A DNA stretch of 64,000 bases from Selaginella moellendorffii. Lineage: Eukaryota > Plantae > Lycopodiophyta. Location of the stretch: the NCBI RefSeq assembly GCF_000143415.4, contig NW_003314333.1, positions 813,815 to 877,814 on the forward strand. The letters are read 5' to 3'. Of the stretch, positions 692 through 64,000 are shown one piece after another (the first letter of the stretch is position 1; each line of letters begins with the position of its first letter). Made by a program: the position numbers and the translations under genes. The notes under the pieces were generated by a model. The model made no database searches, was not told the DNA's origin, and saw only the letters and a program-made list of their open reading frames with translations.

Positions 692-3004
692 TCATATTTT
701 TCTTAGCAATCTTGGAGAACGAGGACGCTCCTCACAATAAATCTTCTCCTGGATGCTGAAAGATGGAGAGCTTCTTCCACTCTTGACGTTGTAAGCCCCC
801 TGTCCTGGAGAACGAGGACGCTCCTCACGAGAAATCTTCCCCCGGATGCTGAAAGAGCTTCTTCGGCTTCTCTGCTGGACTGGAAGCTTTCCCCGGATGC
901 TAAACTCCGGACTCACCCGGCCTAGTTTCGGGCAGTACGCTCCGGACCCTGGAAAATCATTCCATTCGTTGTTCTTCACCGGGCCATACATCGTAAATGA
1001 TGGACTCGTTGGCCTGGAAGAGATAGTATACGCTCCAGGTCCCGGAGAGCTGCTCCTGGAAGTGGAAGAAGCCGGGCTACTAAGTCGGCCGTGCATGCTG
1101 AAGGAAGGACCGTCCATGGAAGATCTCGAGGTGTAGGAGCCGGGGCCGGGGGTGTCACGTCCTGATAACTCTTCTCGCATCCTGTGCTGCGGACTGTATG
1201 ATCCCGGGCTGGGAGAGTTTGGAGTTCTTGGTGAGCTTTGTCTCGACTGCATGGTGAAAGCCGGGCCTCTGGGAAGCCGCACAGAGTAAGTACCGGGGCC
1301 TGGAACATCGCTTTCTCGTGGAGACGTCGCCTTGCCAGTGATGGTGAAAGCTGGTAGACCATAGCCGATGGTTCCATTCTCGTACTTGTAGGCTCCGGGA
1401 CCGGGACTTCTCGAGCGGGGTGACGAGTCTCGGGGCTTGCCAGTGATTGAAAAATGCGGGCCGTGTGGCTTCCCTATGATCCTGTACGCTCCTGGCCCTG
1501 GATTTTCTGTTTTGTCCTCCGGAACAAAACGGCGAGTGCCGAGAGAGAAGGATGGCGAGCTCGGCCTCGACACAACGTCGTAAGTTCCTGGTCCTGGAAA
1601 GTTCTCCTTTGGACGTAATGGAATCCTGGACTTGATAGTTATCCAGGGACCGTTTGTTTGAAACTCGGCGTCCTGGTGTTCTCCCGGTCCCGGAGTTGGA
1701 TCTGGTTGTGGAGGACCCGACGGCCGCCTCGGAGATAAACTGGATCTTCTCCTGGAGCTGGAACCTCTCCTGTCTAGATTGCCAGAGTCCCTTCTTCCTG
1801 ACTCCCCTCTCTCTGGATTGAAAGCCGGATCATCCGGTTCCGGCATCAAGAAGGTCCCCGTCTTTGTGATCTTGTAAGCCGGTCCTTTCGGATTCACCTT
1901 GACGATGAAGTAGCCAACTTCCTTTTTCTTCTCCTTCTTCTTCTTCGGCAGATGCTCGGGCCTGTAGCTGGAATAAACCCCGTGACCAGGAACGTTTGCA
2001 TGAGCATTCAACGAACCTTCAACCGCTGTCTTGGTCCAGCTAGTGTTTGTCTCTCGCATCGGGCCGGCACCTTTGCCTAGGACGGACAACAAAGAAGCAA
2101 ATGGCTTCGGGCTGTGAGCTCTGGGAGGCGAGTTAAACCGCGGCGCCATGGTGTAAGCCGGACCACCAAAAGTTCCTGGAAGATTGTGCTGCCCCGGCCC
2201 GGGACTCCGGTCCTTTGCAGCGTCTCTAAACCGAGGAGACATCGTGTAGCCTGGACCGTCCGGCCTCCTCTTTACGTAGTGTGCTCCTGGTCCGGGATTG
2301 TGAGACCTCTTGCCATCGCCAAGCCGGCTTCCCATCGAGAAAGCTGGCGAAGATGGCTGGGACTTCGGCGAGTACCATCCCGGCCCCGGTCCCGGCGATG
2401 ACGATCCTCCACGCAAAGTAGCCGGCTTTCCAAAGTTCGTGGAAACCAAACTGGATGTGTCTAGCGCGACGTTCTTGGAGCTGGAAGTTTGTGTCGATTT
2501 CTCTGCCATGGTTGTGATCGGGAGCTTTAGAGGCTCGAGCTTCTTGGACTGGACGCTGGCACCATCCTGCTTCTCAGAGATCCCACTGCTCCTATAGCTA
2601 ATCACCGGTACTCTAGTTGACAAGCTCTTGTTCCCCATGCTAGTGTGAGAGTTCCTGGAGCTCACCAGAGAGTTGCTGCTGCTACCATGGAAGAAAAATG
2701 GTGGTGGAGGAGGAAGAACCTCTATCTCGTCAAGCTCGCAAAGCTTAGCTCGAAAGAATCCACTCCCTCCTAAAATCTCTGGCCTGGGGACGCTGTTGTG
2801 GAGGAGCCTGGGATGAAATACAGTGCTGCCTCGACAAGAAGGATCGCAAGCCTGTGAGAGATTGCCTGCTACTCGTCTCGGAGAGCTTGTGATTCCAATT
2901 CCAGCACTGCTCCAAGCGGATCTGGGAGTGGTGCCGCCGCCGCCACCGCCGCCGTCCCAGTTCGTGTCGTGACCACTGCGCCAAAGAGCTGGCAGTTTGA
3001 TCAT
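692..3004 (-). CDS. Sperm-tail PG-rich repeat (SHIPPO-1/ODF3-like) axonemal protein
   Basis: 770-aa ORF with about 14 PGPGxY-type repeats (e.g. FPGPGTYD, NPGPGAYR, SPGPGAYK, TPGPGSYT), usually followed by P[AS]F[ST][MI] motifs, the SHIPPO-repeat pattern. True start and possible introns uncertain. Confidence 0.75.
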   Translation of the reverse strand: MIKLPALWRSGHDTNWDGGGGGGGTTPRSAWSSAGIGITSSPRRVAGNLSQACDPSCRGSTVFHPRLLHNSVPRPEILGGSGFFRAKLCELDEIEVLPPPPPFFFHGSSSNSLVSSRNSHTSMGNKSLSTRVPVISYRSSGISEKQDGASVQSKKLEPLKLPITTMAEKSTQTSSSKNVALDTSSLVSTNFGKPATLRGGSSSPGPGPGWYSPKSQPSSPAFSMGSRLGDGKRSHNPGPGAHYVKRRPDGPGYTMSPRFRDAAKDRSPGPGQHNLPGTFGGPAYTMAPRFNSPPRAHSPKPFASLLSVLGKGAGPMRETNTSWTKTAVEGSLNAHANVPGHGVYSSYRPEHLPKKKKEKKKEVGYFIVKVNPKGPAYKITKTGTFLMPEPDDPAFNPERGESGRRDSGNLDRRGSSSRRRSSLSPRRPSGPPQPDPTPGPGEHQDAEFQTNGPWITIKSRIPLRPKENFPGPGTYDVVSRPSSPSFSLGTRRFVPEDKTENPGPGAYRIIGKPHGPHFSITGKPRDSSPRSRSPGPGAYKYENGTIGYGLPAFTITGKATSPRESDVPGPGTYSVRLPRGPAFTMQSRQSSPRTPNSPSPGSYSPQHRMREELSGRDTPGPGSYTSRSSMDGPSFSMHGRLSSPASSTSRSSSPGPGAYTISSRPTSPSFTMYGPVKNNEWNDFPGSGAYCPKLGRVSPEFSIRGKLPVQQRSRRSSFSIRGKISREERPRSPGQGAYNVKSGRSSPSFSIQEKIYCEERPRSPRLLRKI

Positions 3005-15994: not shown

Positions 15995-16239
15995 TGCTGC
16001 TCTCTCGAGCATGAAAGACCTTCCATTCGAAATATAGGGCTTTAACAACAAACGTGGCAAGAGCCAACAAGGCCAAGTGGCAGCCGCGCGTCCAAAGTAC
16101 ATATTCACTGGTTATGACTACCATAACTATGTTTAGTTCTATATGTGTTTAAAAATAATGAACTTGTTTAATATTAAAAAATATTTTTAAAATAAAAAAA
16201 TTTAAAATAATTTCTTTGTTAACCCCAAAACAAATAACT

Positions 16240-16385
16240 ATTATGATTATGACTATTATTATTATTATTATTATTAAAAGTCCAGAAGAAAGAATCAGAT
16301 AGAATAGATGTTTTAATGGGTAAAATAAGCATATTATTATTATTATTATTATCATCATCATCATCATTATTAATATCATTATTAG
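16240..16385. repeat. (ATT)n/(ATC)n trinucleotide microsatellites downstream of BURP copy 1
   Basis: attattattatt... and atcatcatc... runs, much reduced at the equivalent position of copy 2. Confidence 0.8.
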
Positions 16386-16400
16386 CTTTTTTAGATCCAA

Positions 16401-18311
16401 TCAAGCATAGACACTGGCAGTGGGAACGAACATAATGACCGTTTCCACAAACCAGTGACAAACATAAGTCTTGCCCATCTTGTGGCACAGAACGTTTGGA
16501 GTGAGCTCCATGCCACTGCTGGTCTTCACATTTACTTTGGAAGCGCTGGTGCTACTCACCTTGTGACAGAAGTAAACTTTGTATGGAAACATAGTCGTGT
16601 GGCAGACGACCATAAGAGTGTCGCCTTTCGTGATGGGCTTGACCTCGCCAAGCTTGATAGTTTTTCCAACCTCGGCCGCAAAAGCCTTGCTTCCTGTCAC
16701 CATGGTAATCTCCACAGGGCCAAGGGTGGAGGTGACGAACTCGGCCATTTCTTCCGTGGAAGCCACACACTTCATCTTCCCCCCAGCATTGTCATTGCAG
16801 AGTTCCAGAGTGAAGGCCATTTTTCTTGCCAGTGGAGACTCCTTTGGGACGTTAAACTCTTTCAAGTATGAGTCAAGGCTCCGCTTACCGAAGTTTGTGT
16901 GCTTAGCCATTGCGCTTGGCAGGAGTGCCCGTGGAGGATAAGTGTCACGGATGTTTGGGAGGACACTTTCAGTTCCTGTCAAGATTTTCCACAAGTACGA
17001 GTAAGAAGATAAGTTTGCAAAAGGAATGTTTGGACATACCGTTTCTTTGTCGGAGTTCTTCCAGTGTGAAGAAGTGATGGAGCATTCCAGGGGAGCACTT
17101 CGTTATTAAGGCTTTGATGGTTGGCCAGTCCATAGAGTGCAGTGACTTCCTTCCTCCATAACCCTCTTCCTCGTACTCAGTAAAAATCTGGATCAAATAC
17201 AGCGGCATGTTCTTCTTGCAACTAGTGCTTGGTTTGACAGAAGCATCGCCAAAGTGAGCATTTCCTCCTAATCCGTGGTCACCAAAGTGAGCATTTCCAC
17301 CTAGAGAAGCATCACCAAAGTGAGGATTTACGCCTAAACCATGGTCTTTGAAGTCCCCAAAGTGAGCATTGCCACCTAAACCTTTGAAGTCTCCATTGCC
17401 ATGGTCCTTAAAGTCACCAAAGTGAGCATTACCACCCAAACCATGATCTTTGAAATCGCCGAAGTGCGCGTTGCCACCCAAACCATGGTCTTTGAAGTCG
17501 CCAAAGTGGGCGTTACCACCCAATGATCCATGGTAACCATTTCCACCCAAACTTTGGTCTTTGAAGTCACCAAAGTGAGCATTACCACCGAAACCATGAT
17601 CTTTGAAATCGCCAAAGTGCGCGTTGCCACCCAAACCATGGTCTTTGAAATCGCCAAAATGGGCGTTGCCACCCAATGATTTGAAATCGCCAAAGTGGGC
17701 ATTGCCACCCAAGTCATGGTCTTTGAAGTCGCCAAAGTGTGCATTTCCACCCAATGATCCGTGGTCTTTGAAGTCACCAAAGTGCGCGTTTCCACCCAAT
17801 CCAGTGTCACCAAAGTGAGCATTTCCGCCAAGCCCGTGATCCTTATGAAAGTCACCAAAGTGAGCGTTTCCACCCAGAGCTCCATGATCTTTGAAGTCAC
17901 CAAAGTGTGCATTGCCGCCAAGATCTCTGGCTTCCAGCGAGCGTACACGGTCATGGAAGTCACCAAAGTGAGCATTCCCTCCGAGCTTGCTTGCTGCAAG
18001 GGCGGTCTTCTCTGCAGCATCGCCAAAGTGGGCATTGCCTCCATGCCTTCCATAAGGATGACAAAAAAATCCTGCACGGTGGCAAAGCTTTGCATCGGCC
18101 GTGAAAACGCCTCTTCTCATCTGCTCGCCGAAGCGAGCCGATTCGAATGCCCCCAGAGGCGAGGCTTCATCGGCGAAACTCGTGGCGATTATGTCACTGC
18201 ATTCGGAAAGCTGCCCCAGCTTTAGTAACGATTGAACGATAGAAGTTGGAAAGAACTACTTACAAGGAGAGACGAGAAGAGAAGAGATAGGCCGAGCGCA
18301 AGGCGATCCAT
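16401..18311 (-). CDS. Secreted BURP-domain protein with GGNAHFGD repeat array, copy 1 (exons 18311-18264, 18219-17040, 16975-16401; about 600 aa)
   Basis: Signal-peptide exon MDRLALGLSLLFSSLL; repeat array; BURP start HFFTLEEL...LPNIRD..P.RALLP; CVASTEEM; four CH dipeptides (CH-x10-CH-x25-CH-x7-CH); GT-AG introns keep frame. Confidence 0.9.
17245..18042 (-). repeat. Coding tandem repeat: 17 exact GGNAHFGD plus one GVNPHFGD
   Basis: Counted in the translation; unit mostly 42 bp with synonymous codon variation. Confidence 0.95.
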
Positions 18312-18519
18312 GGTCTTGCGATGGGGCTGGAAGCCAGAATTTATTGATCGTAGTCTCACTGTGCAAGTAAAGAGACAGATATCTTTCAAGCCTCCGTGGC
18401 TTTAACTCTTTTGTCGGAGCGTGAATTATAGAGGAAGAATTCAATTTAGAATTGCATGTTGAAACTTTTGCTAAAACTCTTTATAAAATTATTGCATTGA
18501 TTAATTGATCGATTTTGGA

Positions 18520-19666
18520 GATAAGGACCCGCACCAACTTTCGGGCTGGACGAATTCTGGCAGAATTTTCAAGATAATTATTTAATCTAATTAATTTGTA
18601 TTAAGGTTGGGACTACTACTTCTGCAATTGATCCATTACCAGCACTGGCTGATAGTGCCAAGGTAAAAATACATTTTCTAGTTATTGAATGTTTTAATAT
18701 TTTCCAAGAGACGGGAATGTGGGATGTGGTTCCATGTTGATGCAGCTTATGCTTGTAATGCATTTGTCCAGAATTTCGACATTTTTTAAATGGTGTTGAA
18801 AATGCCCACTCTTTTAATCTAAGTGCAAATAAGTGGCTTCTTACCAATATTGACTGCTCCATACTTTGGCTGAAGGTTTGATCTTTTACAAACGTTACGA
18901 TCAATTTTTAATATACTCTTACAGGACTCTAAGCAGCTATCTTCGACACTTTCAACATTAACAAACAAAGAGGTATGAGTTTTTAAATCTACTCTTTTTC
19001 ATAGTTCAATTCAGTCTCGGGTGGTAAATTTCAAAGATTGGCAAGTTGCTCAAGGAAGACGATTTAGGTAAGTGCGAATAATTCTTTTTCCTTTGACATG
19101 GGATACTCTTTTCAGATCTTTAAAGCTGTGGTTTATGATGCGCTTGTATGGAGCCTCGGGACTTCGTAGCCACATAAGAACTCACATAAACCATGCTAAG
19201 CATTTCGAGATCCTTGTGCGAGAGGACTCTCGCTTTGAGGTATAACTCGTGAGAGTTCTCTAAAATTGTGAGACCATGATCTACGTTTGTGAGTTGCCAG
19301 ATCTTAGCACCATGTCGATTTGGTCTCGTTTGCTTCAGGCTCAAACCAAGTGTAAAACAGTAAGGGCCAACAGCGTCGAGCGCCGTCAGGTGGTCGAAGA
19401 TTGGAATGGACACTCGGAGAGATCTCTGTGAAGATAACGGAGGGAAACTGAACTGTTTGCTTCTGGAAGCTGGGGGAAAGATTTTCATGACACAAGGAGC
19501 TCTCAAGCTATAGTGAAATGGGACTATAACCTATTTATCCTCAGGTACTCTCGGGCGTGTATACATTGAATGTCAATTGGTGGCACGCAGACTAAACGTG
19601 AAAATGTTGATGGTGCGTGGAAGATAATCCAGGAGGAAGCACAAAACTTGTTAGATCAAGATTAAT
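18520..19666 (+). pseudogene. Truncated duplicate of the AADC-like decarboxylase
   Basis: Near-identical to 23900-24990 but lacks about 1 kb of 5' exons, has small frameshifting deletions and an approximately 70-bp foreign insertion. Confidence 0.88.
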
Positions 19667-19739
19667 AAGACCAGGTTATAATATCAAGAATAATAATTAA
19701 ATAAGAAAACCCTAGCTTTTAAAATGGTGAAAATTCTGG

Positions 19740-20580
19740 CCCAGTGGCTATGTGTGAGAAAGGGGCGAGTCTCGGAAGAGTTCTAGATGTGGTGACTAGG
19801 TATGTTTTTCTCTTTTCCTTTGTATCCGTTCCAGGTACTAGGCTCGCCAGGCAGCAGCATTGCCCGAGCAAGAGGGCTGTAGAAAGATCGAGGTTATATT
19901 TCTCAAGATCGTCTCCCAGGATCGCCAGGAGCTTTTCGGGAAGCAATGCGGAGAGCCCATCATCAAGAAACCCATTGAGAAGAGGGGATTTTTGCTAGGA
20001 AACCATTTGAATTGGAGAACACACATAACTGTGGTTTTTGCCGGCGCTATTTTGCTCGCAACACCTGTGTTTGCGGCTGATGCTCTCAAGACATGTTCCT
20101 GTCTTCTAAAAGAGTGCTGGTAATTTTATTTTTCTCTTTTGTCCTTCAAGAAAGATGAGTTTTTTTTTCTTCCCTAGATTGGAGCTTGCTTGATGCATTG
20201 CAGATCCTTCGTGTGCTGCCGATGTTGCGTGCTTGCAAACTTGTAATAATTGACCTAACAAGACTGAGTGCCAAGTAAGTCTCTAGATTTTGTGTAAAAC
20301 TTCTTTTGGATTGATAGACCGTTGTGATTCACAAATACTTTCGGATAAAATGCAGAGACATTTTCGAAAACAAGGTGGTGGATAAATTCAACAATTGAGC
20401 AGTGAAAATGCAAAGACATTTTCAAGAACAAGGTGGTGGACAAATTCAACGATTGTGCGGTGAGCTGCAAGAGCTGCGTCCCGCAGAAGAAAGATGAGGG
20501 GCATTTCCCAGTCCCGCCACCCTCGGCACTTATCTAGAGCTTTGACACCACGAAGTTTACCAGGAAATGGTTCATCTCCA
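19740..20580 (+). pseudogene. Truncated duplicate of violaxanthin de-epoxidase
   Basis: Matches 25110-25960; CGA>TGA and CAG>TAG stops; internal duplication of about 58 bp at 20346-20460; ends abruptly at the duplication junction 20580. Confidence 0.88.
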
Positions 20581-20728
20581 AATGTGTTTAAAATAATGAA
20601 GTTGTTTAATATTTAAAATATTTATTTACAACTTATCAAGAATTTAAAAAAATTAATATAATTTCAACTATTTTTTGTTGTTAACCCCAAAGCCAATAAG
20701 TATTATTATTATTATGACTAAGATACAA

Positions 20729-22693
20729 TCAAGCATAAACAGTGGCAATGGGAACGAACATAATGACCGTTTCCACAAACCAGTGACAAACATAAGTCTT
20801 GCCCATCTTGTGGCACAGAACGTTTGGAGTGAGCTCCATGCCACTGCTGGTCTTCACATTTACTTTGGAAGCGCTGGTGCTACTCACCTTGTGACAGAAG
20901 TAAACTTTGTATGGAAACATAGTCGTGTGGCAGACGACCATAAGAGTGTCGCCTTTCGTGATGGGCTTGACCTCGCCAAGCTTGATAGTTTTTCCAACCT
21001 CGGCCGCAAAAGCCTTGCTTCCTGTCACCATGGTAATCTCCACAGGGCCAAGGGTGGAGGTGACGAACTCGGCCATTTCTTCCGTGGAAGCCACACACTT
21101 CATCTTCCCCCCAGCATTGTCATTGCAGAGTTCCAGAGTGAAGGCCATTTTTCTTGCCAGTGGAGACTCCTTTGGGACGTTAAACTCCTTCAAGTATGAG
21201 TCAAGGCTCCGCTTACCGAAGTTTGTGTGCTTAGCCATTGCGCTTGGCAGGAGTGCCCGTGGAGGATAAGTGTCACGGATGTTTGGGAGGACACTTTCAG
21301 TTCCTGTCAAGATTTTCCACAAGTACGAGTAAGAAGATAAGTTTGCAAAAGGAATGTTTGGACTTACCGTTTCTTTGTCGGAGTTCTTCCAGTGTGAAGA
21401 AGTGGTGGAGCATTCCAGGGGAGCACTTCGTTATTAAGGCTTTGATGGTTGGCCAGTCCATAGAGTGCAGTGACTTCCTTCCTCCATAACCCTCTTCCTC
21501 GTACTCAGTAAAAATCTGGATCAAATACAGCGGCATGTTCTTCTTGCAACTAGTGCTTGGTTTGACAGAAGCATCGCCAAAGTGAGCATTTCCTCCTAAT
21601 CCGTGGTCACCAAAGTGAGCATTTCCACCTAGAGAAGCATCACCAAAGTGAGGATTTACGCCTAAACCATGGTCTTTGAAGTCCCCAAAGTGAGCATTGC
21701 CACCTAAACCTTTGAAGTCTCCATTGCCATGGTCCTTAAAGTCGCCAAAGTGAGCATTGCCACCCAAACTTTTGTCTTTGAAGTCACCAAAGTGAGCATT
21801 ACCACCCAAACCATGATCTTTGAAATCGCCGAAGTGCGCGTTGCCACCCAAACCATGGTCTTTGAAGTCGCCAAAGTGGGCGTTACCACCCAATGATCCA
21901 TGGTAACCATTTCCACCCAAACTTTGGTCTTTGAAGTCACCAAAGTGAGCATTACCACCGAAACCATGATCTTTGAAATCGCCAAAGTGCGCGTTGCCAC
22001 CCAAACCATGGTCTTTGAAATCGCCAAAATGGGCGTTGCCACCCAATGATTTGAAATCGCCAAAGTGGGCATTGCCACCCAAGTCATGGTCTTTGAAGTC
22101 GCCAAAGTGTGCATTTCCACCCAATGATCCGTGGTCTTTGAAGTCACCAAAGTGCGCGTTTCCACCCAATCCAGTGTCACCAAAGTGAGCATTTCCGCCA
22201 AGCCCGTGATCCTTATGAAAGTCACCAAAGTGAGCGTTTCCACCCAGAGCTCCATGATCTTTGAGGTCACCAAAGTGTGCATTGCCGCCAAGATCTCTGG
22301 CTTCCAGCGAGCGTACACGGTCATGGAAGTCACCAAAGTGAGCATTCCCTCCGAGCTTGCTTGCTGCAAGGGCGGTCTTCTCTGCAGCATCGCCAAAGTG
22401 GGCATTGCCTCCATGCCTTCCATAAGGATGACAAAAAAATCCTGCACGGTGGCAAAGCTTTGCATCGGCCGTGAAAACGCCTCTTCTCATCTGCTCGCCG
22501 AAGCGAGCCGATTCGAATGCCCCCAGAGGCGAGGCTTCATCGGCGAAACTCGTGGAGATTATGTCACTGCATTCGGAAAGCTGCCAAACAGGAATCCCCA
22601 GCTTTAGTAACGATTGAACGATAGAAGTTGGAAAGAACTACTTACAAGGAGAGACGAGAAGAGAAGAGATAGGCCGAGCGCAAGTCGATCCAT
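20729..22693 (-). CDS. Secreted BURP-domain protein with GGNAHFGD repeat array, copy 2 (exons 22693-22646, 22601-21368, 21303-20729; about 618 aa)
   Basis: Near-identical to copy 1, with one extra 14-aa repeat (FKDKSLGGNAHFGD) and a 4-aa insertion near the signal peptide. Confidence 0.9.
21573..22412 (-). repeat. Coding tandem repeat: 18 exact GGNAHFGD plus one GVNPHFGD
   Basis: Counted in the translation. Confidence 0.95.
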
Positions 22694-22930
22694 GGTCTTG
22701 CGATGGGGCTGGAAGCTAGAATTTATTGATCGTAGCCTCACTGTGCAAGAAAAGAGACATAGATTTTTCAAGCCTCCGTGGGGACAATTGCTTTAATGCT
22801 CTTTTGTCCGGGATCGTGAATTATTGATCTTGGCTTTGTACATTTCTCGATTTGCAGATAAGGACCCGGCACCGGCTATCGTGCTGGACGATCTCAACTA
22901 ATCATGTCAGAACCCTAAACACCGACGTTG

Positions 22931-24997
22931 ATGGATCCACAAGAGTTTCGAGCTCAAGCGCACAAGATGGTCGATTTCATCGCGGACTACTATCGGGATG
23001 TGGAGAGCCTTCCTGTGCGCAGCCAAGTTACAGTGAGTATATGATAAAGATCCATTGCCACATTCCAGGTTTGTTTCTTGTAGCCGGGATACTTGCGGAG
23101 TTCTCTTCCATCCAATGCACCCGAGGAGCCCCAAAGCTTTGACACTGTTCTGGACGGTTTGCCTCGAGATTATCCATCCTATGATCCAAGAGTAGAAACA
23201 GCATTGTCGATTCGATTGTTTGGCACACAGATGTGAAGTCAATGATAGTCCCTGGCGTGACGCATTGGCAGAATCCAAACTTTTTTGGTTTCTTCCCATC
23301 CAACAGTAGCACGGCGGGGATGCTGGGTGAGTTTCTCAGCGGCGGATTCAACGTAGATGGAAGCGAGTGGGCGACTTCTCCCGCGGCAACCGAGCTGGAA
23401 ATGCTCGTCCTAAACTGGCTGGGAAAGCTTCTCAATCTTCCAGACGAGTTTCTCTTCAATCGAAGCGGTAAACTCTTCATTTTAATCAGCAGTAGATTAA
23501 CTTGAAGTTTAAATAGGCAATGGTGGTGGAGTGATCCATGCTAGTGCTAGTGAGGCTGTTCTAGTAGCCTTGCTAGCCGCTCGAGGTCGGGCTATTTCAG
23601 AGAACAAAGCCAAAGGTCTGGAAGAACAAGAAATTCTCTCCAAACTTTTGGTCTATACATCGGATCAAACACATCCTTGTCTACACAAGGCATGCGTGGT
23701 AGATAAACTATACATATTTAAATAGTATAATTTCTTATGAAATTGTTATTGCAGATTGTTGGGCTCCCCAAAAGCAACCTTGTGATTCTGCCGACACTTG
23801 CGACGGATGATTATGCTCTTTCACTTCCTATATTAAAATCAGCTGTTCGAAACGGTGTCACGAAAGGTTTCATACCATTTTTCCTTGGAGCAACAGTGCG
23901 TAAGAATTTTCAAGATAATTATTTAATCTAATTAATTTGTATTAAGGTTGGGACTACTTCTTCTTCTGCAATTGATCCATTACCAGCACTGGCTGATATT
24001 GCCAAGGTAAAAATACATTTTCTAATTATTGAATGTTTTATTAATTTCCAAGAGACAGGAATATGGGATGTGGTTCCATGTTGATGCAGCTTATGCTGGT
24101 AATGCTTGCATTTGTCCAGAATTTCGACATTTTTTAAATGGTGTTGAAAATGCCCACTCTTTTAATCTAAGTGCAAATAAGTGGCTTCTTACCAACATTG
24201 ACTGTTCCATACTTTGGCTGAAGGTTTGATCTTTTACAAACGTTACGATCAATTTTTAATATACTCTTACAGGACTCTAAGCAGCTATCTTCGACACTTT
24301 CAACATTAACAAACAAAGAGGTATGAGTTTTTAAATCTACTCTTTTTCATTTATACAATTTCATTTCAGCTAAAAACTAGTTCAATTCAGTCTCGGGTGG
24401 TAAATTTCAAAGATTGGCAAGTTGCTCAAGGAAGACGATTTAGGCAAGTGCGAATATTTTTTTTTTACTTTGACATGGGATACTCTTTTCAGATCTTTAA
24501 AGCTGTGGTTTGTGATGCGCTTGTATGGAGCCTTGGGACTTCGTAACCACATAAGAACTCACATAAACCATGCCAAGCATTTCGAGATCCTTGTGCGAGA
24601 GGACTCTCGCTTTGAGGTATATCTCGTGAGAGTTCTCTAAAATTGTGAGACCATGATCTACGTTTGTGAGTTGCCAGATTTTAGCGCCATGTCGATTTGG
24701 TCTAGTTTGCTTTAGGCTCAAACCAAGTGTAAAACACGAGGATAACGGATGGAAACTGAACAGTTCGCTTTTGGAAGCTATCAACTCCGGGGGAAAGATT
24801 TTCATGACACACACAGTAAGAAGCTCTCAAGCTATAGTGAAATGGGACTATAATCGATTTATCCTCAGGTACTCTCGGGCGTGTATACTTTGAGGATGTC
24901 AATTGGTGGCACGCAGACTAAACGTGAAAATGTTGATGATGCGTGGAAGATAATCCAGGAGGAAGCACAAAACTTGTTAGATCAAGAGATCATTTAA
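22931..24997 (+). CDS. Group II PLP-dependent aromatic L-amino-acid decarboxylase-like protein (TyDC/TDC family), divergent
   Basis: [59 protein letters not shown] (PLP lysine), KDWQ..QGRRFRSLKLW; exons splice in frame, including one GC-AG intron. Confidence 0.9.
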
Positions 24998-25220
24998 TAA
25001 GATATCATTGTGCCTAAAAAACATTTAGGAATAATAATAATTAAATAAGAAAAACCCTAGGCTTTAAAATGGTGAAAATCCTGGCCGTTGGCCAGTGAAA
25101 TAAGCGGCGGATCCATGGGCTACGTGGGAGAAAGGGGCAAGTTATCCATGGAGTTTCAGAAGAGTTCTAGATGTGGTGACCAGGTATTTTTCTCTCTTTT
25201 CCTTTTTATCCGTTTTGGCG

Positions 25221-43445: not shown

Positions 43446-44021
43446 AGTAACATACTTATCAGCTAAATAATAATACTATATACTTCTATCAACTGAAAGT
43501 GTCCTAGCGTTCTTTGTTTCAGCTGTTTTGCATCAATGCAAGATAAACTTACTAGGAATCCTTGTAAACATACAAGAAGATCTATGAGGTTAGAGGCAGG
43601 AGGCTTAAGAGATCTACATTACTAAGAGGCCTCTAATGTGTCAGGGCCCTGGTATCTCCTGGCTTACTGATCGTAGAATATATTTGCAACTTCCACTAAT
43701 GGTTACAACATTCCTAGTTTGATCCATTTTGATATATTTGGGTTTGCATGAAGCTAGAGGCTTCAAAAACAAATACAAAATTGCATCATCGTCGTGGATA
43801 GCCAATGTTCTTGCTTTTGTAGTCTAGAAAAAAAAACAATCAAATTTTGAAAATTTTTCATGTTTCAATGTCATTTTTACTAAGAGATTTACAATTTTTT
43901 TTACATTGAATTTTAAACCATGCAACCTTATACAAAGTTTGACAACAAAGATTAATCTACCATATAGAAAAATATATAAATCTCTCATTCTTATTTTCCT
44001 CTTTAATCTCTAAAAGGCACA

Positions 44022-44190
44022 AGAATTGCCTAAAACTAGTATACTAATTTATAATTTCTTTTTTTTGCCCAACAAAACTTGGACACTATAAATACTTGCA
44101 ATCACTAGAATTGCCTAAAACTAATACACTAACTCATAGTTTTTTTTTTTCCTAACAAAACTTGAACACTAGAAGAACTTGCAATCAATT
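44022..44190. repeat. Two-copy tandem repeat, unit about 85 bp
   Basis: agaattgcctaaaacta...aacaaaacttg...acttgcaatca occurs twice. Confidence 0.75.
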
Positions 44191-47100
44191 GCTATAATGT
44201 TGATTTGATCAACAAATAATACTACCATGGTGACTAGATATAAAAATACTACATTTAAATTTTTCAAATTCATTCTTCTATAATATGATTGCCTCTTCTT
44301 TTTGTTTCTCTTCTTCAGCCTAAAAGTTTTATTCAAGCTCCAGAGCAAAATTAATATCCCCCTCAATTACCTTTAGCTGCTCTCTCTAAAAATCCCCCTC
44401 AAATAAATGATCTATCATTTCCTCATTGTCCATATTCTGGAAAATGCAATTTATTTTTTTTATCACTTCTTTGAATTTCCACTAAACCTTCCCCAACTAG
44501 AGTTTGTTTTTCTTCATTCACTCCTTTCTCCTCCCTTTGAAGTATTGTGATGATATTAGTTATTTTGTTATTATCAATTTCAAGATCTTCCAAGTCTGCC
44601 AGCCGGATCACCACCACAGTTTCATCACTTTGTTGACCACTCTATTTCTAGTCAATAACCCTTCCTTGACTATTGTTGATTATTAAACCCTTGTTTATCT
44701 TGTTTTCAATTGGAGTGCATTTGAGCTTTTTGTTTTGATATGCTATATCCACTTTTTGAATGTTGCTTAATCTTAGCCACTTCATATAGATGAGCCTTGT
44801 TTTTCCACTATAGGTGAATTTTTCCTACACTGTTTGTAATATTACATTGGCTAGCTGATATTGTCATTGTTGAAGTAGTCAAAGTTGCCACACTCATTGT
44901 GATTGCACTTTGTATAAGTCAAGTGCTACTGTTTCAGGTATGTCTTCAACTCATCCACACTTCTAAATTGGAATTTATTTTGCTGGGAGGATGAAGACCC
45001 AAAAAGTGGGTAATTCTAGAGAAGATGAAGTTCTTTGTATTCCTTACTGCTCTTTTTTGGTATGGGAAATATTCACCACTTTACATGTGAAACACTATTT
45101 GCAAAGTATGAACCACCCTTTGTGATACATGATTTACAGGTGTATGCACCTCCTTACATGAATGAATATTTCCTATATAGGCAAAATTATACAATTACTA
45201 CAGTAAAATTTATAACTCAATTTCTACCCACGTTTAGAATGTATATATCACCCCATGAGTTAATCGAGCTTTTGCCAAACAAAGCAGTTGAGAAGCTTCA
45301 CACTATAAATACGGAACATAGAGCTATAAAGTTTGTTATTAAATGTAGGTATCAGTTTTGGAGACACTACTACCATCACTTTAATCTCTGTCTAAAAAGG
45401 TAAAACAACCTTAAACACTTCTAAAAATTCTAAAATACATTGCAAAACTTAAGAATTTGTCATACAAACTTAACCAAAGACTTGTATTGACCATTACCAC
45501 CCGTTGACAAAGAGGCTAGAGAGAAATTTACCTTGAAAATTAATTTTTTCTAGATCTGAAGCAAAGTCTTCCACAAATTAATTATTACATGCTTGAAAGG
45601 TCACCTATTGTCATTCCATAAATAAATTGATCTAAAATAAGCTATTATGTACTAAAAAATTTAATCCTTGTATTGATTTCATAGAGTAATTTCATAAAAT
45701 GGTTTCCACACCCTGTTCAAATTAATTTATAATGTTGATCCATTTAAAAGAGAAATTTGTTAAGAGTAATAGGCTAATTTTTCTAATTCCATAGTTGTAA
45801 GGGCAAGATTGGCTGTAAGTTAAAAGGTACGACCCACTGTGAAGTAAGCAAGTTACTCTGGAATTGACTATCACACGCCAGAAACTTTGCACTAAATTAA
45901 TGTTAACCATACTAAGCACAGGCAAAAAGGAAGGTCTTTCCTGTGCTTGGAGAAATTGAGGATTGACAACCCTTTACAACCCTGATAGAAGTTGATTGGG
46001 GGAATTGGGGTAGATACAATAAAAATGTTTACCAACAATTTACCACACCTATTAGAAGATACATTTTGCTTATAGACCCAGATGGAAGTTGGTTGATCCC
46101 CACTCTATGTGACTAAGCAAAAGTATAAAAAAGCAAAAACTAAACTATCTTGTATGCCTAATTAAACCAACAAATGATATATTTAACGAAATTGCTTAAA
46201 CAACTCGATGAATTACCGAGTGAAATACTTGACAATATTTTGCTTAAGGTATACAAAAGTTTGATTTTTGGTACCTTTACTATTGTCAAGGAAGGTGTGA
46301 TAATACACTTAAATTACTTTGTAGGTACACAGTGTAAGCAAAACTTATATCTATAAAGTTATTTATACAAAAAGAAAATAGTATCAAGATTTTTTCTAGA
46401 TAAAGAAATAGTCTACCTATCCAAGCTAGATGCAAATTCTGAATATTATAACTTGTGAAGGATTTATAAAATTTTGCCTACCAAACAATTACTAAAATTT
46501 TATGCAATCTTAGGTAAAGAAGCTATTGTAGGAATTTAATAGTTCATAATAAAGCTTGGATACCCATAAGTAGAAATACACCTATTAATAATTGGGCTAA
46601 TAGATATTGGATCAATCCCGAATTTGGATTAATAGGCAACAAAATTTTGTAGAGTAAATTTTTCTTAAGATGGATCATACTTGAGCAAGATAAATACATT
46701 GTGAAAAGTAATATCTTTTGCTTGAGAAATTTTTGGGACTTTCACATAAGAAATATCCTAAACATTTAGCCTTTAAAAGAAAGCCATCTCTATTTCAAAA
46801 TTGATTGGGAACCTAGGTGCTTACTCCTTAAAGTGATTAATAGGTTAATTTATAAGGGGAATATATTACATACCAAAACTTTGTACCACTCACTTCACAA
46901 ACGAGACATAATAACTAGGTTTGCCATAATAACAACACCAATATACTTCAAAATAAATAGGTATAGATCAACAATTGATCTTATCTATAAAGCTTTGGAG
47001 GGCATAATCTTTATGCATAAAATTGTCACTGTCTATACCAAACAAGATGATAGATATACAATATTTCCCTTCACAATCTGATGAGCGGAAGACAGTTTGA

Positions 47101-47499
47101 AAAGAAGTATTCACAAGATCTAAAATGAGATTACAAAGCATTTGCTTATGATATCTGTAATCTTAACCTCCTTTCAGAACAAATTAAATCATTGCTCAAT
47201 CAAGTTAAAGAAAAGTTTGAAAGAGAATGAGCTGAAAACATATTGGGTACACCTCAATAAAGAGGAGTTAAAAATCCCGATACGACTTTGATGGTCACCC
47301 AAAATATATGAATTTATATACTACTCCTTGGCAGCAATGGCACATAGAAAATGCCTTTACTTCAACTGAGAGTAGTGAAATATGAACCAAATATTTGTTT
47401 TGCTTATACTAATTGCAAAATAGAGCATTTTCTATCAAGTTGCAATGAGCACAATGGTAATTGTAGGAATGACAATAGGTATTGTCATCATATATCCAT

Positions 47500-48180
47500 C
47501 TGAATTTGGAATTAAAGGAGAGAACCCACAACTACATATTGAGCAATACATAAAAACAATTAAACTCAATCAAGCATATGGGTAGGAAAAGAACCTTTTC
47601 CCCTATACACAAAAAAAAGAAGCTAAAGACTGGTACTATTATAATAAAGTTAGAAAGCTTGTCACATTTGATGAGTAGGCAAAATTTTTCCTTAAAACTT
47701 TTTCCATGGAAACAAACCCAAGAGAAAACTATGATGAGTTGCAAAATATTCATCAAAGAAAACCTGAGACAATTGAAGAATATACAACTCAATTCAACAA
47801 GTGTTCTAAGCATTATATAGATTTAGTGTCAGACAAAATGCATTTACACCTATATATACAAAGCCTCAAAAAAATTTATTGTGAACATGCAATAAAAAAA
47901 GCTTATGTAGATTTTGATGACTTGAAAAAAGCTATGATTTCCTACCAAGATCTCATAAAATAGTATAACATGGTAAAGTTAGATGAAAAAACAACTCTTA
48001 TAGACAAAGAAACTAATCTTCTAAAAAGCTTCAAATCCCAAACTAATCTTAAATAAAAGATTTGGTGCATAAGATGCAAAAATGAAAGCCACAGCAAGGA
48101 AGAATGCAAACTCTAGCTAATCAAGTGCCAAATTTGTAAATAAAAAGGGCATTCAGCTAAACAATATAGAACCTTGTTTA
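47500..48180 (+). mobile_element. Degenerate LTR-retrotransposon gag remnant
   Basis: Gag-like ELQNIHQRKPETIEEYTTQF; zinc knuckle CIRCKNESHSKEEC and a second broken knuckle CQICK*KGHSAKQY; in-frame stops. Confidence 0.7.
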
Positions 48181-50757
48181 AACAATAAATAGCCCGAGTT
48201 AATAAAATAACACGTAGCCAAAGGTATCCACTTGATGATAGAAATTATCGTAGGAAGAATGATTACAATGATAATCAAAGTGCCAAGTAAGTATTCATAA
48301 ATACCCACATAGTGAAAGGCAAAGTGACCATCGAGATTATCTGCCTAGGGGTAATTTTTGAGATTATCCACCTAGCCATGAGAAAAATAGGCCTAAAAAC
48401 TATAATTAGCCTAAAGAGTACGATCAGTTTAGAAGTTACAATAGACCTAGAGATTATGAAAGACCAAAAGAGTATAATCAAGCTAAGACTCTTACTCCCT
48501 ATCTTAAGCTATACAATCAAGCAAAATCATTAACACCACATAATTTAATAACTCAAGAGTGCAATCCTGACTTCCATATGTATTGATGTAGAGCACATCA
48601 ACCACCAAGACCAACACATCGCAATACTCGACTAGGAAAATTAGACCATGCACCAGGAACTCAATGATCTACATTGAAGTGTCGAGGTTATCACTATGAA
48701 GACCAAGCTCAACAATCTAGAGTAGGATTTGGAGAATTTGACTAGTTGAGGATAGGTACTAGGTTTGTTGTGGGGGAGTAATGAAGAAGTAAATGTTTTA
48801 CCTTATATATATTCTTAGGCAGAGCAAAAGAAGAAAACTTAGGTGAAATGGAATTATGCCTAAGCTTAGGCATCTAAAGAAGAAAGACTCGACTTATACA
48901 ATGCTCGTCATAAATAAGTGAAAAGAAGTTAAGAACAGTTATAAAATCATGTAGTATATAAGTAGCAATTAGACATGCTGGAAAACAACCCCTATTCACT
49001 ATTGTATACATTTGCATTGAATTAACCATTTTTTCTCCCGCTTATGATTATTTGTGCAAAGTAGAGTTGAAAGAGTGATATATACTTATCTTTACTCACG
49101 CTTTTAGGGTTCAAGGCTAAGTTCTTTTCTATTCTCTTCTCATTCTTCTCTTTTTCTTTTCTCTATGTTTTTGTATTTGTTTGTTTGTCATTATTTTGTA
49201 GGTAGGGGCAAGAATGCAAGTATAGGCAGAAAAAACCTTACTTAGGGCACATTCCTCCATACTTTTAAGATCTCTCCAGCATTAGTATCGTAACCACAAC
49301 TAAGATTTCTCAAGAATTTGCTCTAAAACCCAAAGAAGAAACCAAAAAACAAAGGGAGGATTGGCTAGAAATCAATCCTCCTCAGTGAAGTCACTAAATG
49401 TTGAGAGGGGAGCTTCTCAATATGGGGAGAACACTTTTTTATTTGAAATCAAGCTCAAAACATCCTTTTGTGTGAACTCCCTTGCCCTAGAAAATGGGGA
49501 AGAAGGGGAATATACCTTTGTGCCCTAGCATCTTCTTGCACTTCTGGAATATTTTAGTAGTGGAATATTCTAAGAAATCTCACTCAAAGCTTTAAGCTAT
49601 CTCCTAACAGTTTTGTCCACCACCGAGGTAGACAATGCAACCGACCATCCTAGTTCCCTTACAGCAATCATCATTTAGCTCCTCGGAAGTCATTTTAGGT
49701 GAGGAAGAGCAAGGTGAGTTGGCATCTCTCTTGGTGGATCTAATGGTGGGAAAACTAAAGAGCAAGTTTGATTCTTTCTTATAGTGACCACAAAGAGGAT
49801 AGAGTAGATCTTGTAAAGGCAAGAGGAGATGGAGGCAACTTTTAATGCAGCTCCTAGAAGGGCATCTCCCTCACACTCTTGAGCCAAGGAAGAGTGTTTT
49901 CCCTTCCAGCAATGGCAATTGTTCAAGTTTCAAGTTTCAACCTTTGAGAGAATGAGAAAGATGGAGGCTTTCACTTAATCCAACTTCTCCTTCCCTTTTT
50001 GGTATTTCAATTGACATATGCCTCCTCATCAAAGCCGTCAATTCTAGATATGTCAGTATTTCCATCACCACTAATTTTAGTACAAGGGCCTCTACAATGA
50101 GTTACCCAACCTCTGGGTTCTTCTTGTTCTCTTCATCAATCCGCAAGCTAGTGTTGGCATCATGAGGAATTCATGTGTTTGTAACTTCAAAAATACCACT
50201 GTGGCCTCTTCCATCACCATTATTGTCTCTGTCATAGACAATTACCTCATCCCAATGGACTACTCCACCAACCATCTTGGGAACATTTGTGACAACTTTG
50301 CTATAGTGGAGTGGGTTGTTCACACTAGCTTTATTTGGTCCTCAATGGTATTAATTTCAGCCCATAATGGTGTCTCCGTTAGTGCTTGGAAGTGCTAGCT
50401 CCACATTCCCCCAAGGTCATCACCCCTCAATGTTGAACCTTTGGTAGAAGAAAGATAATCTCAATGTTCTAGAATATGGAGGGGAGAATGATATTGTCAA
50501 GCTGCAAGATTAGCTATAGAGAATCAACCACTAGTTCAACTATAGAGTAGAGAAATATAAGGCTCCATTTGCTACTTTGCATCTCAAAGACTAGCTTCTA
50601 AATGGTTCTTTAGCTTGGATTGAGCAAACACTCTTCTAGACTAGGAAACATTCAAGGCTTGCATATTGGGTTAGGTGACCTTTTGAGAAGTCCAAACTTA
50701 AGAGCTTATAAAACCTTAATTCACTAGGAGTTCATCATTATTGTTGTGGGCAAATTA

Positions 50758-50990
50758 TCTTTTAACAAGCTTTACGACATACCAAAGCTTCAAACATTGC
50801 AAAAATTCAACAAACAATAGTTGCAAACTTGCCATATAGTCAACAACATTCCCAAAGAAGCACTCACATGTACCTAGCACCTTTTAACAAGCTTTAAGGC
50901 ATACCAAAGCTTCAAATATTGCGAGAATTCAAAAAACAATGGTTGCAAACTTGCTATATAGTCAACAACATTCCCAAGGAAGCACTCACA
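50758..50990. repeat. Two-copy direct repeat, unit about 122 bp
   Basis: ttttaacaagcttta...cataccaaagcttcaaa...gttgcaaacttgc...agcactcaca occurs twice. Confidence 0.8.
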
Positions 50991-52699
50991 CAAAGATACC
51001 TAGCTTCCCTCTTGACATCAATGGTAGCAGATATTGCTCAGTCCATTAAGCTATGTTGTATGCTTTACATGCAAACATGAAGTTGCGTGATTTGGAGGCT
51101 AGATTGACATCAAGGTCGAATTGGGCTAGACAGAATGGTGGAGACTCTCAATTCAAACTAACACCAGCAGTGGCTCCTCTAGCTTGTCTAATGATGCAAA
51201 CCAAGCAGTTGAAATTCATTCCTCAGAGTGATCAAGCCAAGAAACTAGAAGATTTATACATCAGAAAGTGTTTTGACCATAGTACAAAATGGAGTTAGGG
51301 CTATAAAGAGGTTTGCAAGGCCTGAAGGTCACTTACCAACTTGAACGTGGACCATACTTGAGTTCATAAGTTGAAGAGTTGAGCTCGTGAGTTAAGCTCA
51401 AGTTTCAATACAAACATTATAAACTTTAAAATATTAAGGTTATGGTGAATTTAATAATTTCATAACTCTCTACACATTATATAGATAAAAATGTTCTAAA
51501 GAGCACTTCTTGTTCTAATAATTTAAATATTTACTACATGTTAGAATAGGGATTGTTTGTCAAAATATAAAATAAGATGTTTGCAGAAAAAGTATTCTTG
51601 TCACTTCCTTAAATTTGTACTCTGTGCTTTTTGGCTAGTAAATGTCAGGTTTATCAGAATTAAAAAATTAATAAATTTGAGATAAGATTCTATGTAAAGC
51701 TATATAACTGTTTGAAAGGAAAAAAAAAACAACTATTAATATAAGCTTATTGTATATAAAAGAAAGACATAATTATTTTCTAGAATACATTCATGAGATG
51801 TTTGTTATAGCATATTGGCTAAAATTTATAAATCCTCACTCGCACTTTCATTTGAAGAAAGTGAAATACATACAAATGTTTATGGGTTCTAGTGCTGGTA
51901 ATTTTAACTCTTACAATCTTTTTTCCCAATGTTTGAAAGTTAGAAGATGCAATAACTATCCTATTGCACATCATAACCAAACCACACAAGAAAAAGAAAG
52001 AAAGGATAATGAAGATAGTGATCATGAGTTGAAGATAAATACAATGATAGAAAGTGTAACAAATTGAGTGAAAAAGAATACTCTCCTACTTGTTTTAGAA
52101 AAATGCAATTTTGTGACTTTCAAGAAATGCCTTATATGTTTTTTGATTTCCGGTGGAAATAATGGCAATGATCAATATGATGATATATATGCTCTTGTGA
52201 CACACTGCAACATCACACACCCAAAAGACTACCATATAATATTTTTTGAGATGGTAAAGACAAAAATGGAGACACATAAGTACTATGGCCAGTATTGCAA
52301 ACAGAACACTCGCAAGTATATGAAATAAAAAAATGTTTTTTATTAATTATATAAAGTATAATAAATTTATATTACTAATAGAGAATAAACATTGATAGTG
52401 TTAGAAAATCTAATTAGCTCCAAAAGTCTTTTGCAACTTAGCAATAGTAAGGCTTGCTTGGTATATATGAATATCCACTTTAGGATCCTGATTCAAAATG
52501 TTGATGAAAATGTAATATATATGCTTGCAAGGAGCATATACCTTTCTATGTTCTTCACGCTTCATAAAACCTAGACATATGCAAGAAGGAAAGTCTTGAA
52601 TAGCAATTGTGCACTTTCCATGTTCTGTTTTGACTGTCTCTTTTGCAAGTATAATGATGTACTTCGTGGAGAAAGAATCTCACACTCAAACATTTGAGA

Positions 52700-55500: not shown

Positions 55501-57679
55501 TTCTATTGTTGTCTACCTTTACCCACTTCGGAAAAAAAAAATTCCGAGCATACAACTATACTGGTGTCATTGTGAATCACAGCCATTAAAGAAATAGAGC
55601 CAAGATGAAGATCAAAATGCTGACATAAAAACTTTTGGAAATAATACTCTAAGAGAATGAAAGAGGTGGGTGATCTCGAAAATATAGAATAAACCTCTCC
55701 ATCCTTCTCAATAAATTTTGGAGTTCTCTTTCTCTTTATGCTGCTTGTAAAAATCCACAATGAAACATAAATTGAAATTTAAGGAGAGCAATAAAAAGAA
55801 TGTCAATAACATATAAAATGAATTTAAATTCTATAGCAAATTTAACATGTGCAAGTGTGACAGTATTAATATTACTGTCATCTATTATGATGTTTGGTGC
55901 ATGTATACATATAAATCCAAGGATTTTCAACACATGAAATTTAATAGTCAATAATGATATCAATAATGATATTTTGTTATAGCATATCAATTTGACTGTC
56001 AGCACATGTGATGTGTCAAGTTGTCAAATCGTAAGTGCTAGATGATGATAAATCTTGTCAAATCTTATTCTTCAATGATAGATTCGATTCTTAGTACAAC
56101 TCGAGTTTTATTTATAATTGTGAACACTTCTCAATGACATTTAAAACACATGCCTATTGTTTAGGATCTAATACAACACAAAATAAATTTCTTGATGAGG
56201 ATTCATCCATTCATAGATTAATATAGTATAACAAATTTTAACATGCTTTATTTATACTCTTTAAAGTTCTTGTAATGATTCCAAAATATGTATAAAATAT
56301 TGATGAGAATACATCCTTTCTAGAAAATTTGGAAAAAAATAATATCATAACAAATCAAAATTGAAAGATTCTTTTTTTTGAATTTAAGTTTTAAAAGTGT
56401 AAGCACATCTATGCAATTCATATAAATTAAATGAATATTTATTTATTTTAAATTTTATATATTATCTTTTTGAAATCTTTATNNNNNNNNNNNNNNNNNN
56501 NNNNNNNNNNNNNNNNNNNNNNNNNNNNNNNNNNNNNNNNNNNNNNNNNNNNNNNNNNNNNNNNNNNNNNNNNNNNNNNNNNAATTTAAATTTTTAGAAT
56601 CCATATTCATTACCAGTCTTCAAACTAAAAATGTTTTATGTTATTTCAAGAGTATATAGTTACTGTAATTTAATAAAAATAAAAATAGCATAGATTTAAG
56701 ATTTAATTGTTATATAAAACTTTTAAATTGTCAAAACAGTAATAAATAAAAAGTGTACATTAGTTACTTTTTTTACTTCAATTTAAACAATAGTAAATAT
56801 TAATTTTTAAAATATATTATATAAAATTATTTATAAAATATTTAATTTTATTTTCATCCACAAAATTACTGGATAATAATAACAGAATAATTTAAAAGTT
56901 TTATTATCTATTGTACCACTATAGATTTTTTTGGTTAGTTATAAATTCTTTATTTATTAGTAAAGTCTCAATTTTATTATAAGTTTTTTTTCATTCTCAA
57001 TCTTCATTACAATTAAATAATTCTTCATGAAATATTTTTTTAAATAAAAATATCTTTTATTAATGTTCTACAAAGAATCTCTTATCTCTAATAACATAAA
57101 CATTAATAGGTGCTAGTTATATCGTCATTAAAATATACAAAATAAACAACCATATTTCACATATAATAATAATGATAAAATCAGATTGAAGATATCATGA
57201 CAGTTGAGATTTAGGTTATTCGGAATGAACGGCCAGGATGAGAGATTACTTATGGTTAGGGCAGCTATCAGGATTAGGGTTAGGGTAGCCACCAAGATTA
57301 GGTTACTGTTTGCCCTATGACTAGAGCACACAAGAGATCAACAGATTTATCACAAGAGAGCGAGAGATTGAGTGTGAAGTGCATGAGTGTGAGAGATTGA
57401 GCACAGGAGAGTGCGGGAGATCAAACGCACGAGTGTGAACACGAATTAAGATTGAAAGTGAGAGAGTGACAAATCCAACATGCTCAAGAGATTAGGAAGC
57501 AACAATGCCACCAAGGGTGAGTTTCCATTTGATTGATTCCATGATTTTTCTTTTTGCTTTTGCCACCTTCTATCGCCGGNNNNNNNNNNNNNNNNNNNNN
57601 NNNNNNNNNNNNNNNNNNNNNNNNNNNNNNNNNNNNNNNNNNNNNNNNNNNNNNNNNNNNNNNNNNNNNNNNNNNNNNN

Positions 57680-63654: not shown

Positions 63655-63839
63655 CAATGCTGACTATTGAATATGTTTGCCTCTATGTAAATATTAGAGC
63701 AACAACAATAAATGAGTAGGGTGTAAATGAATGCTCAAGAGATATTAGACTAATGCAAAAACAAGTATATATAGCTTGGAGTTAGGCTTGATTATTCTGA
63801 TGTCATGTATAGGACAACAAGTCCAATGAGAAAGTCTAT

Positions 63840-64000
<161 letters not shown>

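Follow-up and report, generated by a model that had tools for sequence, protein, structure and literature searches.

In our study, a stretch of 64,000 nucleotides from Selaginella moellendorffii (contig NW_003314333.1, positions 813,815 to 877,814 of the forward strand; hereafter the window) was analysed for two near-identical genes, which lie head to tail in tandem on its minus strand and encode proteins with 17 or 18 exact copies of the peptide GGNAHFGD. Both proteins show the same order of elements, with a hydrophobic, signal-peptide-like N-terminus, a conserved segment SPL-x23-CHRAGFFCH, the repeats and, at the C-terminus, a BURP domain, and each is encoded by three exons. In gene 1 (597 amino acids), exon 1 (18264..18311) holds the start codon and the signal-peptide-like N-terminus MDRLALGLSLLFSSLL and is followed by a GT..AG intron of 53 nucleotides (18211..18263). 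Exon 2 (17040..18210) carries the N-terminal conserved segment, the repeat domain (17245..18042, residues 73-338, with the 17 exact copies and additional degenerate units) and the beginning of the BURP domain, including its FF motif. A second GT..AG intron of 64 nucleotides (16976..17039) separates it from exon 3 (16401..16975), which codes for most of the BURP domain, including the pattern CH-x10-CH-x25-CH-x7-CH, and ends in the stop codon at 16401-16403. The model of gene 2 (611 amino acids) consists of exon 1 (22646..22693), an intron (22581-22645) which exceeds its gene 1 counterpart by 12 nucleotides, exon 2 (21368..22580) with the repeat domain at 21573-22412 and its 18 exact copies, a second intron (21304-21367) and exon 3 (20729..21303) with the BURP domain, and it differs from gene 1 by two amino acids across the last 260 codons.

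RNA contigs from four independent studies span gene 1 between about 16390 and 18311 at a word depth of hundreds to thousands. Their splice joints, read on the minus strand with GT..AG ends, match the gene model at 16975/17040 (64 nucleotides) and 18210/18264 (53 nucleotides); the second intron is spliced out in the contigs of all four runs and the first intron in three of the four. An earlier note, made from the letters of the window, had described the order of signal peptide, 17 or 18 exact repeats and C-terminal BURP domain, and this architecture is borne out by the spliced gene models and by the Pfam search described below; the lack of expression that the same note had allowed for was not found, as spliced gene 1 transcripts are present in all four studies. 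In three runs, RNA contigs also join 17426 to 17538, so that 111 nucleotides (37 codons, in frame) are missing. This joint carries 15 nucleotides of shared sequence and is without GT..AG ends, and the skipped segment is most likely a repeat-number allele, a paralogue or an assembler collapse rather than an intron. Two (TAT)n microsatellites (16239-16276 and 16332-16384) lie directly downstream of the gene 1 stop codon, and RNA coverage stops at about 16386-16393.

The gene 1 model is letter-identical to RefSeq protein XP_024515919.1 and the gene 2 model to XP_024515918.1, so the genes themselves are known: they are already annotated, under the RefSeq name polygalacturonase non-catalytic subunit AroGP3(-like), and one of them is already named, XP_024515919.1 being the SmPG4 of a BURP family survey that placed it in the PG1beta-like subfamily by motif content (PMC9121072, supplementary table 1). 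A third paralogue, XP_024515913.1, is found on the same scaffold (674 amino acids, 18 exact and 23 core-like units) and the other haplotype scaffold carries two more copies; the number of exact units ranges from 17 to 19 across the paralogues and haplotypes.

The repeat domain of gene 1 is composed of 26% Gly, 12% Phe, 12% Asp and 12% His with an isoelectric point of about 6, and Tandem Repeats Finder reports arrays at a period of 42 nucleotides and its multiples. The commonest full unit is the 14-residue GGNAHFGD-FKDHGL, which accounts for 24 of the units. The start-to-start spacing of the cores has its mode at 14 residues, with intervals of 11, 12, 15, 20, 21, up to 25 and longer also present, and a few units are degenerate (e.g. 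GVNPHFGD and GGNGYHGS). Among 105 core-like units from five paralogues and alleles, Phe is present in 105, Asn in 104, Asp in 104 and His in 103. FxxY does not occur in the repeat domains, FxxH occurs 10-15 times per protein (about 11 of the 17-18 units) and the pair HF 18-23 times; Trp is absent, and the 0-2 Tyr residues per repeat domain are confined to degenerate units (GGNGYHGS in gene 1 and gene 2). Therefore, the earlier description of a peptide free of Tyr and Trp holds for the core GGNAHFGD and is only nearly true of the region as a whole, which has one Tyr in the degenerate GGNGYHGS. Likewise, the picture of a fixed octapeptide between variable linkers stands as far as GGNAHFGD is concerned; the Leu ahead of the core (position -1) is conserved as well, being found in 81 of 89 exact cores, and most linkers are FKDHG. 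The GGNAHFGD repeat was not mentioned anywhere in the literature searched, burpitide papers included, which agrees with the failure of the earlier note to place this core in any described burpitide class.

The 17 exact copies of gene 1 are written in 16 distinct 24-nucleotide sequences which vary at third codon positions alone. Among them the mean pairwise proportion of synonymous differences (pS) is about 0.70, corresponding to a Jukes-Cantor synonymous distance (dS) of about 1.98, and dS is 1.74 in gene 2; the nonsynonymous distance (dN) is 0 in both. Since synonymous sites are near saturation while dN is 0, the copies are old, and neither recent duplication nor gene conversion has made them uniform. 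The peptide L-GGNAHFGD is under strict purifying selection, with each copy constrained, and the selection on the peptide claimed in the earlier note is thus confirmed (dN 0 against dS of about 1.7-2.0 among exact copies). These values also bear on the view that the array is a neutral, recently expanded low-complexity sequence in decaying or non-functional genes. The varying number of units (17-19 exact) and the 111-nucleotide repeat-number variant in the RNA contigs would suit such a view, whereas the intact reading frames and the spliced transcripts at high contig depth in four studies speak against it; being contradicted by a dN of 0 at near-saturated dS and by spliced transcripts, it is very improbable.

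A relation to known BURP repeats emerged when a profile built from 83 PG1beta repeats was used to score each of the 14 rotations of the unit. The best score was that of the rotation starting at FKDH (-9.5, the next being -17.7), and in a shuffle control this score was equalled by 180 of 20000 shuffles. In this register the unit reads FKDHGLGGNAHFGD, as compared to FKDYGQGSNGNTFD in a PG1beta-like protein of Welwitschia, and it agrees with the repeats of PG1beta proteins (tomato PG1beta/AroGP, Arabidopsis PGL1-3, rice OsBURP12/14/16) at F1, G5, G8 and N9. On its sequence, the 14-residue unit shows itself as a derivative of the PG1beta FxxYGxxxN repeat in which Tyr4 is replaced by His4; as the FKDH register is the best one, the apparent linker FKDHG would be the remnant of an ancestral FxxYG with Tyr changed to His. 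The invariant octapeptide falls in the half of the repeat that varies in seed plants. The full-length AlphaFold2 model has a predicted local distance difference test score (pLDDT) of 20-35 over the repeats and is uninformative on their fold, and a look-alike search of the ESM Atlas with the repeat domain returned weak BURP-repeat matches only (score 0.58).

The BURP domain (Pfam PF03181) was recognised on exon 3 of both genes with an E value of 1.9e-30 and 106.5 bits (cutoff 27), covering profile positions 24-179 of 216. In an alignment of the Selaginella domain with 59 other BURP domains, in which a column was taken as conserved at 75% or more, 27 of 34 conserved columns are kept, including the FF dipeptide and every Cys and His of the four Cys-His (CH) motifs. 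BURP domains are defined by the FF dipeptide and by a CX11-12C surface pair (PMC12874468). Here, the FF dipeptide is at residues 396-397 and three Cys pairs are retained, and the surface pair is C-x9-C (CNDNAGGKMKC), two residues below the canonical spacing. The four CH motifs align at C162/H163, C174/H175, C201/H202 and C210/H211 (numbered within residues 370-597 of XP_024515919.1). Their spacing is X10, X25 and X7, compared with the canonical CH-X10-CH-X25-27-CH-X25-26-CH, so that the last interval is off the canon: the conserved segment that joins CH3 to CH4 (consensus xDTSxWxxxHxAFxxLxxxPG) has lost about 18 residues, leaving X7 against X24-26 elsewhere. The conserved C-terminal Trp is Phe in the Selaginella domain. 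Short CH3-CH4 spacing (X7, X10, X11) was found in only three others among 150 representative relatives. In the proteins P0064, P0050 and P0091 (Ginkgo Gb_00403), the CH3-CH4 interval is independently shortened to 7-11 residues.

In AhyBURP and ArbB2, two bis-His copper sites are built by the histidines of the four CH motifs; a disulfide staples each site, and all four histidines are essential (PMC12186524, PMC12164859, PMC12874468). The AlphaFold2 model of the Selaginella BURP domain has a pLDDT of 92.7 and a predicted template modelling score of 0.87. Among solved structures it matches significantly only AhyBURP, the USP-type BURP peptide cyclase of peanut (PDB 8SY2/8SY3; E value 3e-10, root mean square deviation of about 2.5 A over about 145 columns, template modelling (TM) score about 0.5), and its TM score to Swiss-Prot BURP models of all subfamilies is 0.70-0.77 (by query). 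The best structural match shares the four CH motifs of the two bis-His copper sites; it differs in that identity is 18-21% and that the second-site ligands are about 25 residues apart in AhyBURP and 7 in Selaginella. In the model, CH3 and CH4 are placed on strands that lie next to each other in a tight hairpin (E198-204, E207-212), as CH1 and CH2 are on theirs (E157-165, E171-189), and the CH3/CH4 register would be the same if residue 204 pairs with 207. From this modelled geometry, we infer that the domain could plausibly have a second copper site in minimal form.

Word-indexed searches for homologues, started from the repeat open reading frame, from the full protein's BURP region and from the BURP piece, returned S. 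moellendorffii proteins alone; orthologues of other species may be hidden by fragmented transcript assemblies. Among 1.84 billion representatives searched, one cluster, their own, was reached at an E value below 1e-30, and the next relative was 39% identical. The best BURP matches beyond this cluster are PG1beta-like proteins of seed plants (Acorus, Colocasia, Medicago, Welwitschia) with strict 14-residue FxxYGxxxN repeats. The best sequence matches, the RefSeq name and the grouping of SmPG4 (PMC9121072) are thus features shared with PG1beta, and by repeat architecture the proteins would be classed as PG1beta-like.

The PG1beta proteins of tomato, alfalfa and other plants offer a precedent for what such a protein may become: the repeat domain by itself forms the mature wall protein, and each observed FxxY Phe is lighter by 2 Da, which was interpreted as dehydro-Phe (PMC5313189). 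BURP enzymes depend on copper and O2, and they abstract hydrogen from an unactivated carbon of a core residue, after which that carbon is coupled to Tyr-O, Trp-N or Trp-C (PMC11253845, PMC12056006). By analogy, we tentatively favour, at somewhat less than an even chance, the explanation that the Selaginella proteins are secreted fused BURP proteins of the PG1beta type, specific to their lineage, which act in cis on their own repeats and yield a modified His/Phe-rich polyprotein. The C-terminal, copper-type BURP domain would act on the N-terminal repeats and would then be removed, and the mature product would be a repeat polyprotein rich in His, Phe, Asp and Gly, like the tomato polygalacturonase beta subunit. 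If the analogy with the Phe of the PG1beta FxxY holds, the BURP domain would oxidise the repeats, with a mass change of -2 Da, and the modified site may be either the ancestral Phe of FKDH or the invariant His-Phe pair. Because Tyr and Trp are absent, the partner would be the His imidazole, or else dehydro-Phe would be formed. The product, with its many His and Asp residues, may in addition bind copper or zinc. The computed [M+H]+ is 774.32 for GGNAHFGD (772.30 after loss of two hydrogens) and 887.40 for LGGNAHFGD (885.38 after the same loss), and the computed [M+2H]2+ of the repeat peptide GGNAHFGDFKDHGL is 736.34.

Several observations weigh against this explanation. PG1beta repeats have an invariant Tyr in FxxY which is missing here at sequence level; it is replaced by His or the whole element is lacking, so that FxxH is partial while GGNAHFGD is the invariant part. 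The irregular spacing of the cores (11-25 residues and more), as against the strict 14 residues of seed-plant PG1beta, appears to fit a multi-core precursor better. The loss of about 18 residues between the ligands of the second copper site, which sets the domain apart from PG1beta, could mean that the activity is altered or abolished. Moreover, a maximum-likelihood tree built from 62 BURP domains puts the Selaginella proteins, which have a long stem (0.94), outside the seed-plant PG1beta clade, itself well supported, and their sister is the putative lyciumin precursor QFZ95611.1 of S. uncinata (support 97/75). The sister grouping, however, is one of two long branches, and a union with the PG1beta clade was not rejected by the approximately unbiased (AU) test (p 0.377), so the position outside that clade is not a significant one. 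With both branches long and this value of p, the phylogeny is compatible with either affinity, PG1beta or Selaginella lyciumin.

By nearest neighbour, then, the proteins may belong to the Selaginella group of fused burpitide precursors. On this account the genes would encode precursors of ribosomally synthesised and post-translationally modified peptides: a His crosslink would be formed in each L-GGNAHFGD core, for example from the imidazole nitrogen to C-alpha of the Gly which lies four residues upstream or from His to the C-beta of Phe, and small cyclic peptides of a new, Tyr/Trp-independent class would be released by proteases. This is possible but rather unlikely. The core repeats lie N-terminal to the BURP domain in the same polypeptide, as they do in fused burpitide precursors, and the tree neighbour QFZ95611.1 comes from the same genus and has in common with our proteins the fused architecture and the N-terminal SPL-x23-CHxxGFFC. 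It differs from them in its own cores QPYSVFAW (with Trp, of the lyciumin type), in its units of about 23-30 residues and in a normal CH3-x25-CH4; BURP-domain identity between the two is about 32%, and no lyciumin core QP(X)5W with C-terminal Trp was found in gene 1, gene 2 or the paralogues. SkrBURP of Selaginella kraussiana, the other Selaginella repeat-BURP protein in the literature examined, is a proven fused cyclase (PMC11253845). Compared by description, it resembles the present proteins as a fused autocatalytic BURP cyclase with repeated cores, and differs in having VLFYPSY cores, from which the selanines with their Tyr-O-to-C-beta ether crosslinks are formed.

Multi-core precursors typically have an invariant 8-9-mer between linkers of differing length and sequence, as seen here, the four copper-ligand His residues are all retained, the repeat region is predicted to be disordered, and the spacing of Gly1 and His5 resembles the ring from Gly4 to Trp8 of the lyciumins. 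The moroidin BURP cyclases (KjaBURP and relatives) accept His as a crosslink partner (PMC12056006) and represent the sole BURP chemistry known with a His side-chain partner. In moroidin, however, the BURP-made His crosslink is to Trp only, from His-N to Trp-C2 (PMC12056006), and the Selaginella core is without Trp. Further, the characterised burpitide crosslinks, in four described classes, all need Tyr or Trp (PMC11253845, PMC12186524), and GGNAHFGD has neither. A polyprotein product is suggested by the 14-residue register of PG1beta, a peptide of the GGNAHFGD sequence is absent from the literature searched, and the release sites, for which the earlier note had considered Asn and Asp, are conjectural; the reservations on the tree given above apply to this account as well. 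As for the chemical step taken by itself, it is doubtful that the remodelled BURP domain crosslinks or desaturates a core devoid of Tyr and Trp, be it by a bond from His imidazole-N to Gly C-alpha in the lyciumin-like i/i+4 arrangement, by one from His to Phe C-beta, or by formation of dehydro-Phe.

The composition of the repeats has also to be considered in terms of metal binding. Small residues ahead of His, as in GGNAH, favour amide coordination of Cu(II). With 12% His and 12% Asp, two of each per 14 residues, and an isoelectric point of about 6, the repeat domain might form an unmodified, disordered wall or vacuole protein which binds metal (copper, zinc or nickel) or pectin, the BURP domain serving only for folding, targeting or metal handling. 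The pLDDT of 20-35 over the repeats, the deleted CH3-CH4 loop and the change of the terminal Trp to Phe would be in keeping with such a role. Metal binding alone, however, leaves the invariance of Phe (105 of 105) and of Asn unexplained, and the copper ligands, Cys pairs and FF dipeptide have been kept despite the long branch, arguing for a retained catalytic function; we regard this explanation as unlikely.

A further CH motif pair was noticed in the N-terminal segment. Residues 59-67 of gene 1 (window 18112-18138) read CHRAGFFCH and form an extra CH-x5-CH pair right before the first core; in the S. uncinata lyciumin precursor this segment is CHSLGFFC, with one CH, and in seed-plant PG1beta it is C-x6-C without His. 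This pair might be an additional metal site.

Our analysis has placed an observation far above chance in a family that was already annotated and whose kinship with PG1beta is absent from the earlier note. For this family the reading in terms of BURP chemistry is a reasonable hypothesis drawn from sequence, and thus a lead rather than an established peptide class. BURP domains have only recently been recognised as a class of copper enzymes; their proven products all use Tyr or Trp, and the only chemistry defined for the large PG1beta branch is an unexplained -2 Da change on the Phe of FxxY. A model lycophyte is now seen to carry three or more paralogues of a PG1beta-like fused BURP protein, highly expressed, with Tyr changed to His and with repeats that are invariant copy by copy. 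This raises the question of whether BURP domains can function without Tyr or Trp, and of whether the PG1beta modification is a desaturation or a side-chain crosslink. If chemistry does take place on the core lacking Tyr and Trp, it would be the first Tyr/Trp-independent BURP chemistry, and the proteins would serve as a natural Tyr-to-His experiment revealing the nature of the -2 Da modification of PG1beta. If the repeats are unmodified, they would clearly illustrate how a BURP protein can become a His-rich repeat protein that binds metal or the wall.

The two genes are the outcome of a tandem duplication that spanned about 4.33 kb. Over the first 855 nucleotides their coding sequences are 99.4% identical, the flanks are 96-98% identical, and blastn of the two duplication units gave 84-96% identity. 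A two-copy tandem repeat of 58 nucleotides is found at 20347-20463, in the spacer upstream of the gene 2 3' end. To the right of gene 2, a gene for a pyridoxal phosphate (PLP)-dependent decarboxylase of the aromatic amino acid type lies on the plus strand (23233..25086, within the region 22782-25086; Pfam Pyridoxal_deC at 23233-23505), and a homologous, truncated 3' copy of it, co-duplicated, is situated between the BURP genes on the same strand (18562..19741; Pyridoxal_deC at 19072-19245). The decarboxylase gene is given here as genomic context. A biosynthetic gene cluster was considered and rejected, because the neighbours are housekeeping genes: they code for a SHIPPO-repeat protein, CPSF73, a transketolase, a Glu/Gln-tRNA synthetase and an F-box protein, and the partly co-duplicated PLP decarboxylase is the only candidate among them. 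The SHIPPO-repeat protein is encoded by a single-exon open reading frame at 692-3004 on the minus strand (770 amino acids; Sperm-tail PG-rich repeats, Pfam E value 8.6e-20). From 44000 to 64000 the G+C content drops from about 50% to 28-38% with few long open reading frames, and this part of the window may be repeat-rich or intergenic.

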